Assembly: GCA_038496445.1 (NCBI GenBank)
Contig: JALMLS010000489.1
Location: 121,875 to 185,874 of the forward strand
Length of the DNA: 64,000 nucleotides
Direction: 5' to 3'
Source of the DNA: Trichosphaerium sp. ATCC 40318
Lineage: Eukaryota > Protista > Tubulinea
A program made the translations under genes and the position numbers. Position 1 is the first letter of the stretch; every line of letters begins with the position of its first letter. The notes beneath the pieces are model-generated. The model saw only the letters and a program-made list of their open reading frames with translations, was not told the DNA's origin and ran no database searches. Positions 12,202-18,100 of the stretch are shown here, in pieces.

Positions 12202-12427
12202 GGCGTTTAGGTTTTTTTGAATGAAGTTTTAGTTCAAAATTTCAATTAAGCACTAGGTTTTATCTCATACGCTCTAAAAGGCCGGCAACAAAGCTCAATT
12301 GAGTACACGTAGACTAAAAATGAACCAACCGCTTCTGTGAAGAGAATTAGGTTCGCCTTTTGTTACTTTTTTGCGATTTTTCACTAAATCGCTGTCTGTC
12401 CTTAACACATAACTCAAAACTCACGCA

Positions 12428-13864
12428 ATGCAAGCAACAACAGATAATCAACTTAAGAAACTTCACTTACGCCGTCTTTTGGACGAATTGGATAATTCTA
12501 CCGGTGAAGGCGCTACATCCATGATCTCGTTGGTAATTCCTGCTGGAGGTAACCTCAACCGCACCAAGGACAAGATCTCGACTGAAATAGGAGACGCTAG
12601 CTGTATCAAGGTATGTGATAATTAAACTATGCTAAATGGAGTCTAACTGTTGCTAGTCGCGGGTTTAACCGACAATCTGTGCAGTGGGCACTCGGTTCGA
12701 TAGATGGTAGACTAAAACACATTAACAAGCTACCTCCTAATGGCCTCTGCATTTTCTCTGGATCCTTCACTTCGTCAGCAACGGGGAAGTCAAGGAAGGA
12801 CACCATTATATTCGAACCAATTGGACCGCTCACCAAAAGTCTTTATTACTGCGGTAGCGGCTTCAAAACCAGCCATTTACGCGGTCTTTTGACGGATCAC
12901 AACAAATACGCGTTCATCATCGTTGGCGGTAGTGGCGTTACTTTCCATACGCTCTCCGGCACTCACAAGACTGATGTGTTCAAATACGACGTGTCTTTGC
13001 CGAACAAACACCGAAGAGGCGGTCAATCTCAACATCGATTCGAGAGGTTGCGAGATGAAGCTTGCGCGGCGTATGTGCGGCGTGTGTCTGAGAAAGCAAC
13101 GCAATTCTTTATCGACAAGAAGACCAACAAGCCTAACGTAAGAGCTTTTTCTTTGTTTGCCTTTTTTTTTTGTAGATTGCTTTAAAATTGTTTACTTACG
13201 TATCTTCTAGATTGCTGGTATCATCCTCGCTGGTAATTCAGGATTTAAGCATGAAGTACACAAGAGTGCTCATTTCGATCAAAGACTCAAGAAACTTGTT
13301 GTACGCATCTTGGACATCCAATATGGCGGTCGTACTGGTTTTTCTGAAGCGATAAAACAATCTTCGGACGTTTTGGATGACTTTGAGCTTGTTCACGAAA
13401 AGCAAGTACTTAGCGACTTCACAACAGCTATCGCTCGCGACAGTGACCGTCCACCCGTTTATGGCGTAAAGGACGTGATGTACGCCATCGAAAACGGTGC
13501 ACTTCAACTATTGATCTTGTGGGACAAATCGCCGATCATACGCTACAGCATCAAGAGCAAGGAGTCTGGAGAGGTGCGCACAACCTATGCGCTCTCGAAG
13601 GATGATCTCCCATCGGAGCTGGTCAAAGAACCTACCTTGTGGGACGTTCAAAGTCATGAACCGTTGTTGGATTGGATAGTTCAAAATCCTGATCAACTTG
13701 GCGGTGTTGAGCTTGCGCTTGTTTCTGATCAAACGGCTGAAGCTGCTGTGTTCATTTCCGGCTTTGGTGGTGTTGGTGGACTCTTACGCTATCATATTGA
13801 CCTACCATCGCAAATGGATGAGCTTGATGATGACTACGAAGATGATTATTCTTGGGCAATGTAA
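12428..13864 (+). CDS. eRF1: Divergent eukaryotic release factor 1 with an internal in-frame TAA requiring a +1 shift
   Basis: TSMISL, EIGDASCIKS, PPNGL, YYCGSGF, HRRGGQS and GFGGVGGLLRY motifs. Introns 12611-12656 and 13138-13210 (both phase 0). TAA at 12666-12668, with the reading continuing in the +1 frame. Confidence 0.93.
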
Positions 13865-14216
13865 ATTAATTTATTGCAAAAGTCTCTTCAACTTCTAAAT
13901 AGTTTACAATAAAATAAATCATTACCATTCATCACTAAATTTTTACGAGCACATTTTTCTTTTTTACACCTGTAAGTACAGCACGTAGCTAATGAGTAAC
14001 CGCCTCAACTCTTCCCGTTATCAAGAATCGAATGACACGGTCTCAGCATTGTATATGCTATTTAAGCACCATAAACAAACCCTCCCATACACCGTCCAGA
14101 GTGGCAGCGTATTCACGCTGACTTATGTGAGGACTTAGTTGAACAGCTCTGACCACAAGTCTGTATCAGAATACAGCGTTACAACGAACAAACTAGGTGC
14201 AGTAGGTATAAAAGTT

Positions 14217-14792
14217 ATGTCGTTGCTATCTCTGCCTCCTGAGATACACTACATGATAGCAGAGATGGATATAGGCTTATTTATACAATGGCCTGTATTA
14301 AACTACCAGTTTGCTATCACATCACGTTATAACAGCGAATTAGAGAAGCATGGAAAGTTCATGAAGCGTTATAGGTCACTAAACATAAATGAAACAACAC
14401 ATTTCAAAAAAGGTCTTTTACACGGCCTACACAAAAGATGGCTGAATGGTATTCTTGTATTACAATGTCAATATACAGATGACTTCTTAGATGGTGAATA
14501 CAAGGAATGGTATGCTAGTGGTGTATTTTATCAACACATTTTTTACAAGAGAGGTAAAAGGCATGGATGGTATTCTTCTTTTTATGAGAGTGGAAGAAAG
14601 AAGAAAAAATGTACTTATATAAATGATAAGATAAATGGCACGTGTATTGAGTGGTATGAGAATGGAAAAATGAGTGAGAGTGGAGAGTATGATAATGGAA
14701 AGCCTGTAGGAGTTCATTCATCATGGGAACAATCTGGAAAATGCACTAAGGTTACATATCAGGCAAACACAGTTGAAATATTAAATACTTAA
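14217..14792 (+). CDS. Intronless F-box-like + MORN-variant repeat protein
   Basis: MSLLSLPPEIHYMIA (F-box-like) followed by repeats of the type G.YKEWY.SG / G.CIEWYENG. Confidence 0.8.
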   Translation: MSLLSLPPEIHYMIAEMDIGLFIQWPVLNYQFAITSRYNSELEKHGKFMKRYRSLNINETTHFKKGLLHGLHKRWLNGILVLQCQYTDDFLDGEYKEWYASGVFYQHIFYKRGKRHGWYSSFYESGRKKKKCTYINDKINGTCIEWYENGKMSESGEYDNGKPVGVHSSWEQSGKCTKVTYQANTVEILNT

Positions 14793-15137: not shown

Positions 15138-18100
15138 TTACAAGTTATTTTTTATTTTACGTGTTCTCTTTGGTTTTTTAGGTGTTTTCTTTAGTTTTTT
15201 AGGTTTTCTTTCATCAACGTCATCTACAGCCTTTCTTTTTGGCGAGTAGTGTTTGATGAGCTTTTTGTGGTCTTTCCAGCCAGCTAAACTGGGGCTTCTG
15301 TCGTGACGCTGGAAAAATTTCTTTAAACCTTCGTAATCTGTTGCTGCCGCAAGCTCCAGACCTTTCTTATATATGGGTACAGCAACCTCTAGCACAAGCC
15401 AAAAGTTTATAAACTCGCAAAACTCTCGGTTATTGCGGAGATCGTTGCCATACCAATTAACTAGACTATAAAGTCGAAGAAGTTCGGCTCTGAGTCGATC
15501 ACGACAATCCAAGTACATCCAAACCCGCACAAGAGATATCAAGTCGTGGGCGTACTCATACGTTATAGATTCATCGCTGATATGGGCATCAATTACCTCT
15601 TTTGCTGCAAACAGAAAGGTTCCTTCGTGCTGAAACACTGAAGTACCATGTCTGACTGCCATACCGAAATCTATTATGTGAGCCTTTCCGTCTCGCACCA
15701 TAATGTTGGTGTGCGTAATATCCCTTGTATAAAGTGTGAGTAAAGTACAATGACGAAAAAAATCTGTAAAGCATGACGTGACGAGAGTCAAAGATTAAAG
15801 GGTACCTATGGATGAATCCAACCTCATGAAACTGCTCAATGAGCTCTGTAAAATGAACCATTGGAGGGCATTCACCAACATTTCTTATGCGATCACATGG
15901 TGGTGAGGTAATGATATACGGTGCGTTGTCATCATCAGTGGTACCATGTTGGTGCTGAATAAAAGAAGTGAGAAAAGCAAGAAAAAATGAAGAAAGTTTC
16001 TATTTTACGTACATAGACTGGTAAACCGTCGATGTTGTGTGGCTTTAACGTTTTTAACACTTCTGCTTCCCACAGGGCGATTGGCTCATTGCCTTCTTTA
16101 AATATTTTGACGACAAACTTTTCTGTGCCAGCCTTAAGTTTGAACACCTTGGATGTAGCGCCAGATCCAAGTTGTTCTCTTGGAGTACACGAGATGCCTT
16201 TGATATCAAATACAGGGAACGACCAACCAAGCTGTTTAGGCGTACAGCTCAGATACTTATTAAAAAGTAAAGTGCCCTCCGATTTAGGACTGATGATGGA
16301 GTACTCGCGTGAGAATGAAAACGTGAAAGGCTTCGGGGCATCTTGCCCATGCCACTCCATCCACGTGAACATTATAGTGTACCTGGTGGCCAGAATGCCG
16401 GTGATAAATTGCCTTGGCGCTTGCGTAAGCATAATATTACATAGGGAGCTTCTAATAAAAACAGTAAGAGCTGAGAATAGAGAAGTGCTGAAAAAAAAAA
16501 AAGCATGGATAAAAAACCCACAAGAAATTGATGTGACGTACACATGTTGCCCCTTTGCTGCAGAATTCAATTTATCAAGTTTTAACTCAACAACAGCCAC
16601 GACTTGATTCTCGTGAGGGATTAAGTTTTCATCCCCAATTGCCGTAAATGTTAAATCTGGCTTGTATTTTCGGCCAATACCGTTTATACCATACTTCGTT
16701 TTTTGGTACGTATTATGTACACGCAAGAAAGGAACCTTTGACTTTCCCACTCGTTCAAACATGAACAAGTTCAGATCTTCCTCTGTTTTAAAGTGCCTGC
16801 ACGTCCTTTTAGGGTGTCCCTTGTACGATGAATGTTGCTGGATTTTAAGCTTATTCATCCAAGGGGTGGCGTCCTTGTGCACATTCGCCCTTTCATTAAG
16901 GTTGCTAAGCGTCGCCGTGTAGTCTACACATTTGTTAAGTTTTTCGCAACATATAAACTCTCTGACAGTATACGTACCATAATTAATCACTGGCTCTAGT
17001 TTAACGCTACGATACGGGAATTGTTTACGTGTTTGTACATCCTCTTCCAACGCCTCAACTTTTTCGTTTGTTTTTCTGTTTTCGTTCTTGAGCCTGGTGA
17101 TAGCCTGTTTATTCTCTTGTTTGAGTGCAGTAATTGTCTGTGCGGTCTCTTTCTTGAAGATGTCCATTTTGGTGTTTAGCATAGCCGCGATTGCTTCAAG
17201 GGATCTGGGATCTTTCTGTTCAGAAGCATCACCCACAGAAACTTCTTCCTCTTCTGATACTTCGTCGCCCACAGAAACTTCTTCCTCCTCGCTCTCGGAA
17301 TCTTCAACGCATTTGGAAAGCGCTTCCAGCTTGCGTATTTTTTCTCCTGCTCGAGTTTCTTGTTTTTTGGTAGGACTTGTGTTTTTCACCTCACAATTAA
17401 AGCTGTGCTCCCTCATGAGTTTTGCCGCCCTGGTTGCTTTCTTTATTTCATCAGCAACATTCTTTCGCTTTTCTGGAGAGGGCGGAACAGACGGTAACTG
17501 CTTACCAGAGGGATCTACACGAGGGTAAGAAAAAAAAGGAAATAGAACTCGCAAAAGCGTTTTTTTTTTTTGTGAGAACAAAAAGACGAACACACATACT
17601 TTCTGGCACCAGTTTTAATATTAGCAGTTCGAATGTAAGAGGTCCCTTCCTATTGTAGTGGAAGTTTGGCGAGTGGAGCCTTTTGAGTTCGTTCTTGACG
17701 ATTTTTATTTTCTTTTTCAGTATGTTCTCTACATTAAAACACAAGTCAGTTGAGACCGTTACAAACAACTTGAAAAAGAAAGTAATAGTTGAGTATCAAC
17801 AGTTCCATCCAAAGGGATATAAAAACGTTCTTATTGAAATGAAAGAGCGGTACGCTGTTGACAAAGTAAAAGATTTAAAAAAAACAAATTCAAAGAAGTA
17901 GCCGCCAAGGCGTTGTAACAGCGACGAAAATCACGAAATACGCGTTGATATGACACATAGGTCGTAAGGGGCGCATAGATTTAGAGATGTAAAACGATTT
18001 AAGAAAACAAGAGCCAGAAGTTTAAAACGGCACTTAAAACGAGCGACACGCGTTGAAATAGACGAAAGAGGTGTTTTTTAAGTTTTTTTGGTTGACAACT

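Follow-up and report, generated by a model that had tools for sequence, protein, structure and literature searches.

A divergent eRF1 gene of Trichosphaerium with a conserved GUU-UAA-C site, a candidate for programmed +1 frameshifting

Introduction

In bacteria, the gene for release factor 2 (prfB, RF2) is controlled by an autoregulatory +1 frameshift at CUU-UGA-C, at the end of a short 5′ open reading frame (ORF) of about 25 codons. Release-factor self-regulation by a frameshift at the factor's own stop codon is a textbook bacterial mechanism; for a eukaryotic-type factor, to our knowledge, it has been described only for the Mimiviridae, at a different site that works in two steps. Here we describe a gene for eRF1, the eukaryotic class-I release factor, in a stretch of 64,000 nucleotides (nt) from Trichosphaerium sp. 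ATCC 40318 (assembly GCA_038496445.1, contig JALMLS010000489.1, positions 121,875 to 185,874, forward strand), hereafter the window, to which all coordinates refer. The gene carries an in-frame UAA at codon 65, after which 374 codons are open in the +1 frame. Full-length eRF1 is very probably made only through an obligatory programmed +1 ribosomal frameshift at GUU-UAA-C, one that probably senses termination activity.

The eRF1 genes R726 of Mimivirus and mg280 of Megavirus combine readthrough at UGA-C with a subsequent +1 shift at CUU-UAG-C or CUU-UAA-C (Jeudy et al. 2012, PMC3521657). In that paper, a P2 product of 25-30 kDa (tag included) and a mis-annotated 5′ untranslated region (UTR) of 640 nt would place the shift well downstream of the NIKS motif. 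The same consensus is found in Klosneuviruses, Tupanviruses and Bodo saltans virus, whose proteins lack the mini-domain and the C-terminus (PMC6582330). In plants, eRF1-1 is autoregulated through stop-codon readthrough combined with nonsense-mediated decay (NMD), with an intron in the 3′ UTR (PMC5397192). We found no description in the open-access literature of a shift after NIKSRV, or of one in a cellular eRF1.

The window gene resembles prfB in that a release-factor gene has a short 5′ ORF ending at an in-frame stop which its own product should recognise, with the rest in the +1 frame. The geometry, NUU-U-stop-C, is also alike: the tRNA in the peptidyl (P) site can re-pair on UUU, and a C follows the stop. 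The two differ in family, eRF1/aRF1 being unrelated to RF1 and RF2, in the stop (UAA, not UGA), in the P-site codon (GUU or AUU, not CUU) and in the length of ORF1 (64 codons against about 25). Where prfB uses a Shine-Dalgarno stimulator, a mechanism not applicable to 80S ribosomes, the window gene has a conserved AAG UCN, and its feedback is one that we infer.

A preliminary description of the window had drawn a parallel with Mimivirus and Megavirus. The parallel stands for a recoded class-I factor of eukaryotic/archaeal type with a +1 shift at NUU-stop-C, with giant viruses involved and autoregulation proposed, but it does not extend to the site itself. The viral genes require two events, the second of them further downstream, whereas the window gene has no readthrough stop and its shift, at GUU/AUU-UAA-C, follows NIKSRV directly, at codon 64-65. 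The window protein moreover keeps the C-domain insert and acidic tail, both missing from Mimivirus eRF1s, and its gene is nuclear, with spliceosomal introns. As with plant eRF1-1, a cellular eRF1 would be governed by termination efficiency on its own mRNA, and a link to NMD is possible, an intron lying downstream of the early stop. The plant gene relies on readthrough of its normal stop and the window gene on a frameshift; frame 0 closes 13 codons past the UAA, so that readthrough here would give no functional product.

Two further eukaryotic systems invite comparison. In Euplotes, +1 shifts at AAA-UAA/UAG occur in thousands of genes and have no regulatory role. The window gene shares with these a eukaryotic +1 shift at a stop, but its RUU-UAA-C keeps to a single codon in a single gene family across many organisms, which agrees with the earlier view that the shift is not of the Euplotes kind. 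Antizyme forms a +1 sensor-effector loop for polyamines, using other heptamers and flanking stimulators; antizyme and the yeast genes EST3, ABP140 and OAZ1 are like the window gene in shifting by +1 at a stop or at a slowly decoded codon in the aminoacyl (A) site.

Gene structure and encoded protein

The gene lies on the forward strand and has three exons, with the following features.

12411 to 12427, forward: 5′ UTR, 17 nt; probable mRNA 5′ end at 12411, the start of a contig from transcript run X1
12428 to 12610, forward: exon 1 in frame 0, the first 61 codons of ORF1, translated as MQATT...GEGATSMISL...DASCIK
12605 to 12610, forward: ATC AAG, the 5′ half of the motif ATC AAG TCN NNN RTT TAA C, which intron 1 splits here
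12611 to 12656, forward: intron 1, 46 nt, GTATGT...CTAAC...TAG, with the TAG acceptor at 12654-12656
12657 to 12665, forward: TCG CGG GTT (S R V), the final three frame-0 codons, GTT being the P-site codon at the predicted shift
12663 to 12669, forward: predicted shift site GTT TAA C (GUU-UAA-C), read from the sequence and the transcript contigs
12666 to 12668, forward: in-frame UAA closing the 64-codon ORF1, present in transcripts of four runs
12667 to 13137, forward: exon 2 in the +1 frame, 157 codons, with NRQSV..., YYCGSGF and GGQ (13018-13026)
13138 to 13210, forward: intron 2, 73 nt, GT..AG, phase 0, spliced out in contigs of X1, X2 and X8
13211 to 13864, forward: exon 3, 217 codons and the TAA, encoding the last part of domain 2, domain 3 (GGLLRY) and the acidic tail
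13865 to 13895, forward: 3′ UTR; transcript contigs stop at about 13871-13925

In the X1 contig a loose end, ATCAACGCAGAGTACGGGG, precedes 12411. We take it to be a cDNA template-switch oligo tail, and so read this contig as cDNA with a 17-nt 5′ UTR. Exon 1 opens with the ATG of ORF1 at 12428 and ends in TGT ATC AAG at 12610, followed by GTATGT. Across 12428-12610 and 12657-12665 there is no in-frame stop ahead of the UAA, and the natural stop at the end of exon 3 (13862-13864) is TAA-A. The +1 frame from 12667 reads NRQSVQWALGSIDGRLKHINKLPPNG...YYCGSGF...HRRGGQSQHRF..., with NRQSVQWALGS... at its start. The exons and introns, the internal TAA and the NRQSV continuation are as they had been described at the outset, as are the open remainder of the gene, its intact GGQ and the lack of any other lesion.

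Joining frame 0 to frame +1 at the site gives a protein of 438 amino acids (aa) that aligns end to end with canonical eRF1 (residue 2 to 438), running through the C-domain insert to the acidic tail, at 38-39% identity to the eRF1 of animals, plants and yeast. The exon-1 product aligns to the N-domain from residue 2; the 61-aa exon-1 piece has no Pfam match by itself, and the ORF1s of relatives carry PF03463 (eRF1_1). The other exon pieces match eRF1_2 (5e-17, 6.8e-09) and eRF1_3 (2.3e-18) in Pfam, and the +1 piece matches solved eRF1 structures in the PDB (E 1.7e-38) in an alignment that begins exactly at N66. The catalytic GGQ is present (HRRGGQSQHRF), YYCGSGF conforms to YxCxxxF, and the eRF3-binding C-terminus is kept (GFGGVGGLLRY and the DELDDDYEDDYSWAM tail). 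Two motifs diverge, TASNIKS to DASCIKS (N to C) and GNGTS to GEGATS; across the frameshift-type genes described below, the first residue of NIKS may be N, Q, C, R, S or A. The window gene encodes a class-I release factor of eukaryotic type, one too divergent to count as a standard cellular eRF1.

The junction itself bears on how the frame would be regained. IKSRVNRQSV in the window stands opposite IKSRVNRLSV in canonical eRF1 without a gap. A -2 shift, giving SRV-F-NRQSV, would restore the same downstream frame, as would quadruplet decoding of GUUU by a special tRNA (with the same product as a +1 shift), and UUU does follow the P-site codon. Both are improbable. Shifts by -2 are rare, in canonical eRF1 NR follows SRV directly, and the exact match of SRV-NRQSV therefore favours +1 over -2; quadruplet decoding would need two special tRNAs, since both GUU and AUU serve as P-site codons among the relatives. 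The two products would differ in a Lys-C junction peptide, predicted to be SRVNRQSVQWALGSIDGRLK after a +1 shift and to carry an extra F after a -2 shift.

ORF1 and the +1 ORF (ORF2) overlap, as they do in termination-reinitiation cassettes, and the gene might then yield only separate products, a 64-aa peptide and an ORF2 protein made by re-initiation, with no trans-frame fusion. The 157 codons of the +1 frame in exon 2 hold no Met codon, however, the break would cut through an unbroken structural element of the N-domain, immediately behind NIKS, and neither piece would be functional as a release factor. Separate products alone are thus very unlikely, and a +1 shift during translation is the preferred reading.

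Transcripts and selection

An index of public runs has the stretch in runs under several organism labels. Transcript evidence comes from assembled contigs of four of these, X1, X2, X5 and X8 (four studies, four organism labels), placed on 12300-14000. X1 and X2 match the window without a difference; X5 departs from it at about 1% of positions, X8 at about 3%. All four runs are spliced at 12610|12657 (given as 12608>12655, with a 2-nt ambiguity, GT..AG), and X1, X2 and X8 also at 13137|13211 (GT..AG). Within 12655-13137 no letter is inserted or missing in any of the four, and TTT-TAA is kept. The UAA sits in the mature mRNA. Contigs of X5 at 13149-13184 and 13156-13925, which differ from the window by several substitutions, extend into intron 2; intron 2 exists in the X5 strain too, and these contigs could derive from unspliced RNA or from DNA in the library.

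These contigs address the simplest account of the break, in which the genome truly has TT and the gene is an ordinary uninterrupted eRF1. One-base homopolymer errors are the commonest cause of apparent frameshifts. Four independent transcript assemblies nevertheless keep the TTT at 12664-12666 with zero gaps, including those of the two divergent strains, and dozens of unrelated contigs carry an identical RTT-TAA-C break at this codon. We regard an assembly or sequencing error as refuted for practical purposes.

Restoration of the frame in RNA, by an alternative acceptor, by U-deletion editing or by transcriptional slippage on the T3 run, deserves more thought. The CAG at 12682-12684, which the preliminary description had named as an alternative acceptor, would join in frame, and rare isoforms are invisible in contigs. 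All four runs, however, show only 12610|12657 with TTT intact, which means that the TTT is no assembly error and that the CAG at 12684 is unused in them. Use of that acceptor would also remove nine conserved residues (SRVNRQSVQ), and relatives without an intron share the stop with no splice option nearby. A run of three Ts is far too short for efficient transcriptional slippage. An RNA-level repair is accordingly very improbable.

Differences between strains were counted in frame 0 upstream of the break and in frame +1 downstream. X8 has 29 synonymous and 7 non-synonymous differences and X5 has 7 and 1, together 36 and 8; in exon 1, six of six are synonymous in frame 0. Since the differences are mostly synonymous on both sides of the break, the two halves are under purifying selection, each in its own frame, which bears out the earlier expectation of selection downstream of the stop.

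Relatives with the same shift site

We searched for relatives by exhaustive phmmer with the exon-3 piece, which returned many eRF1-like proteins (loci carry our numbers below where they must be told apart). A subset of these begins just ahead of NRQSV, as ...SSRVF-NRQSV, SSLGF-NRQSV, SSRGF-NKNSV or VF-NRQSV. Such starts are explained by reading ATC AAG TCN CGN GTT TAA C in the +1 frame, a back-translation that the DNA confirmed. In all, 13 eRF1 genes located by protein similarity, independently of the motif, have [A/G]TT-TAA-C right after (N/C/Q)IKSR(V/I), at the same codon; that relatives would share an NTT-TAA site here had been one expectation of the preliminary description. Their ORF1 of about 50-70 aa ends in ...IKS[RS][VI]-TAA and overlaps a +1 ORF2 that starts with N[RK]xSV. 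In L001, L002 and L003, for example, an ORF1 of 58-62 codons (Pfam eRF1_1) ends in ...[N/C/A/R]IKSRV-TAA and the +1 ORF2 starts with NRQSV or NKNSV; their nucleotides, ATCAAGTC(G/T)CG(G/T)GTT TAA C, match the window even in a contig of 25% GC. Across the relatives, including those from the viral scans below, the heptamer reads GTT TAA C in L001-L003, L024, L036, L037, L103, L105 and L106 (L106/L107), and ATT TAA C, with Ile in the P site, in L102 and L108.

Two of these loci, L103 and L108, are genomic contigs with a GT..AG intron in ORF1, at positions unlike the window's, and L061 is probably another intron-bearing genomic copy. To judge by these introns, the architecture is present in several cellular genomes, with at least two genomic contigs (L103, L108) besides the window. 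L061 (reverse strand, about 620-1500) is a CIKSRV-TAA-C gene on a contig of 52% GC, a later exon of which reads RRGGFSAARYQRL; its GGQ appears to be replaced by GGF, and it may be a non-hydrolysing or decaying copy.

Viral sequences contain both types of gene. A protein-profile scan of IMG/VR gave 26 eRF1 loci, mostly continuous (NIKSRVNRLSV, with codons varying freely). A giant-virus metagenome-assembled genome (L024/L025) reads AAT ATC AAG TCG CGG GTT TAA CCG, and a shorter motif in viral contigs gave three distinct frameshift-type eRF1 genes among 10 matches, the rest being chance, which adds the giant-virus contigs L036 and L037. Two further IMG/VR loci are recoded in other ways. L026 has an in-frame stop before NIKC and a frame change, apparently f0 to f2, just before LPQKHGRGGQS, and so resembles the two-event recoding of the Mimivirus type; L028 keeps its frame and is broken by just one in-frame stop (ILI*PYSG).

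When JGI metagenome contigs were scanned with a stricter motif, 62 matches, chosen by motif, came from about 47 data sets, and all 62 are eRF1 genes with the layout of ORF1, TAA and +1 ORF2. A long class is found on mRNA-like contigs of about 1.2-1.5 kb that hold this gene alone, with short 5′ UTRs and in a few cases a terminal run of As; its ORF2 has 358-395 aa and its motif is mostly QIKSRV. A short class is found on longer virus-like contigs (up to 393 kb) and on some shorter ones; its ORF2 of 272-297 aa ends in ...GVLYY and lacks the C-domain insert, and its members, which share 25-35% identity with the window protein, branch deeply and separately (L053, L072, L078, L080, L085, L087, L090, L045, L057, L086 and L089).

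One metagenome locus, L051:188-2858 (JGI24216J29974_1007609), is a frameshift-type QIKSRV-TAA-C gene whose +1 ORF2 runs to 885 aa. Domains 2 and 3 of eRF1 are fused in frame to a GTPase like EF-Tu, eEF1A and eRF3 (PF00009 7.6e-46, plus domains 2 and 3), apparently as a natural eRF1-eRF3-like fusion encoded after the shift site. P0057, a candidate for an N-terminally truncated protein, turned out to be a continuous eRF1 and was rejected. The profile search was dominated by canonical eRF1, with no named frameshift-type protein among its matches, and no family member listed in the protein searches is named in NCBI or UniRef.

Phylogeny

A tree of phmmer representatives, a sample unbiased by the motif, places the window protein in a clade of nine rows (SH-aLRT 99), all nine of the frameshift type. 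With metagenome sequences added, the protein stands at the base of a clade of 43 rows, again all of the frameshift type (support 93). The approximately unbiased (AU) test did not reject the grouping into one clade of all 13 frameshift genes located by protein similarity (p-AU 0.655), and the constrained one-clade tree was 11.9 log-likelihood units better than the quick free tree. Frameshift-type genes are about 38-45% identical to canonical eRF1, with branches of roughly one substitution per site within the clade. The trees are compatible with the shift site being a conserved feature of one eRF1 clade.

The branch lengths bear on whether the gene was inactivated recently, as a pseudogene, or is a viral insertion in decay that continues to be transcribed. 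Decay could fit the divergence of the protein, the position beside an intronless F-box/MORN gene of giant-virus type, and the relative L061, which seems to have GGF for GGQ. The 36 synonymous against 8 non-synonymous differences, with synonymous ones dominant on both sides of the break, speak against it. The gene shows no further lesion; GGQ, YxCxxxF and the eRF3-binding C-terminus have all been kept. Finally, the break is kept across a clade in which a lesion would not have persisted over branches of such length, so that the site is conserved. We consider a pseudogene extremely unlikely. The earlier proposal of a gene-specific, obligatory +1 shift with RF2-like geometry is upheld to this extent: the break is real in mRNA, the sequence on both sides of it is under purifying selection, and the site is conserved in dozens of relatives.

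Codon constraint and RNA structure

We compared codons around the site between the 13 frameshift genes found without the motif and 18 continuous viral eRF1 genes. The sequences are mutually related, so that Fisher p-values for the following counts are indicative only.

Stop codon TAA: 13/13 frameshift genes; not applicable to continuous genes
Asn codon AAC (gives +4 C): 13/13 frameshift, 6/18 continuous
P-site codon NTT: 13/13 frameshift (11 GTT, 2 ATT), 3/18 continuous
Lys codon AAG: 13/13 frameshift, 6/18 continuous
Ser codon TCN: 13/13 frameshift, 11/18 continuous
Ile codon ATC: 11/13 frameshift, 7/18 continuous

Third-codon positions downstream of the site vary freely. Upstream, AAG TCN (12605-12610 with 12657-12662 in the window) is kept even in genomes of 25-30% GC; at these two positions continuous eRF1 genes often have AAA and AGT. 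These codons, two and three ahead of the P-site codon, may act as a 5′ stimulator. AAG TCN is shared by L001-L003, L024, L046, L049, L092, L102, L103, L105, L106 and L108.

A stem at 12667-12697 had been suggested to overlap the site. We rejected it: it is missing from the minimum-energy fold; of 57 relatives, as few as 2-20 have pairs at the corresponding positions; and, starting inside the A site, the stem would in any case be no downstream stimulator.

Proposed mechanism

Translation would start at 12428 and proceed for 64 codons in frame 0, crossing the first splice junction, until the ribosome reached the site, its P site occupied by GUU (Val) and its A site by UAA-C. In eukaryotes UAA-C is an unfavourable context for termination, and at RUU-U the peptidyl-tRNA retains two of three base pairs after a one-base move, as at CUU-U in prfB. 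A release factor might then terminate, leaving a 64-aa peptide. Alternatively, the ribosome might move forward by one base, the peptidyl-tRNA re-pairing from GUU to UUU with positions 2 and 3 kept; AAC (Asn) would then be decoded and translation would continue through NRQSV..., GGQ and the C-domain. Because termination at UAA in its weak (+4 C) context would compete with the shift, output of full-length protein would be inverse to termination activity, rising when it is low and falling when it is high, in a feedback or sensor loop like that of prfB/RF2. The exon junction 470 nt downstream of the UAA could in addition expose terminated mRNAs to NMD.

Several points weigh against this mechanism. 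Sequence, transcripts and comparison support the core argument well; the trans-frame product and its regulation, slippage as the mechanism, shift efficiency, feedback and NMD are all what we infer. Assembled contigs drop rare variants, and a minor edited or alternatively spliced mRNA could escape them. The 62 metagenome matches, selected as they were, are no measure of motif conservation. The proposed mechanism does not account for the fixed upstream AAG UCN. As for a stimulatory RNA structure, the fold of 12657-12760 held none that was significant (z = -0.70), and RNAalifold on 57 non-redundant site regions found no consensus structure. Last, given the 38-39% identity and CIKS for NIKS, a canonical eRF1 is likely also present, in which case the loop would sense total termination capacity and would not strictly self-regulate.

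Discussion

The preliminary description had presented the gene as a cellular eRF1 with a new kind of recoding. That it is a spliced nuclear gene stands, but the recoding is no private innovation, as the frameshift clade also occurs on giant-virus contigs and in other eukaryotes. We think an accessory, virus-related eRF1 the likelier identity of the gene, ahead of its being the organism's sole eRF1, because of the low identity, CIKS in place of NIKS, the grouping with genes on giant-virus contigs and the F-box/MORN_2 neighbour. This neighbour (14139-14792, forward strand), an ORF directly downstream of the eRF1 gene, has no intron; its N-terminus is F-box-like and it carries MORN_2 repeats (Pfam PF07661). 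Further along, at 15138-17593 on the reverse strand, lies a big ORF pair with a weak protein-kinase match in Pfam.

More tentatively, and on balance doubtfully, the frameshift-dependent eRF1 could be the working (possibly the sole) class-I release factor here and in several other eukaryotic lineages. In that event a prfB-like +1 loop at RUU-UAA-C would govern termination capacity, in a module that giant viruses captured or donated and that in one case was fused to its eRF3-like GTPase.

The site adds a second, simpler and much more widespread recoding site to the one described for eukaryotic-type factors, RUU-UAA-C directly after the NIKS stop-recognition motif. It defines what appears to be a deep eRF1 clade, with clear cases among nuclear, spliced genes in cellular eukaryotes. 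Because gene callers cut these genes in two or shorten them, the family is systematically mis-annotated. As a compact conserved eukaryotic +1 frameshift cassette the site would suit mechanistic work, it may serve to mark where giant viruses and their hosts have exchanged genes, and it lends itself naturally to testing whether eukaryotes can sense their termination capacity through frameshifting. If the frameshift eRF1 is a working factor, it would bring to cellular eukaryotes a regulatory principle thought to be absent from them.

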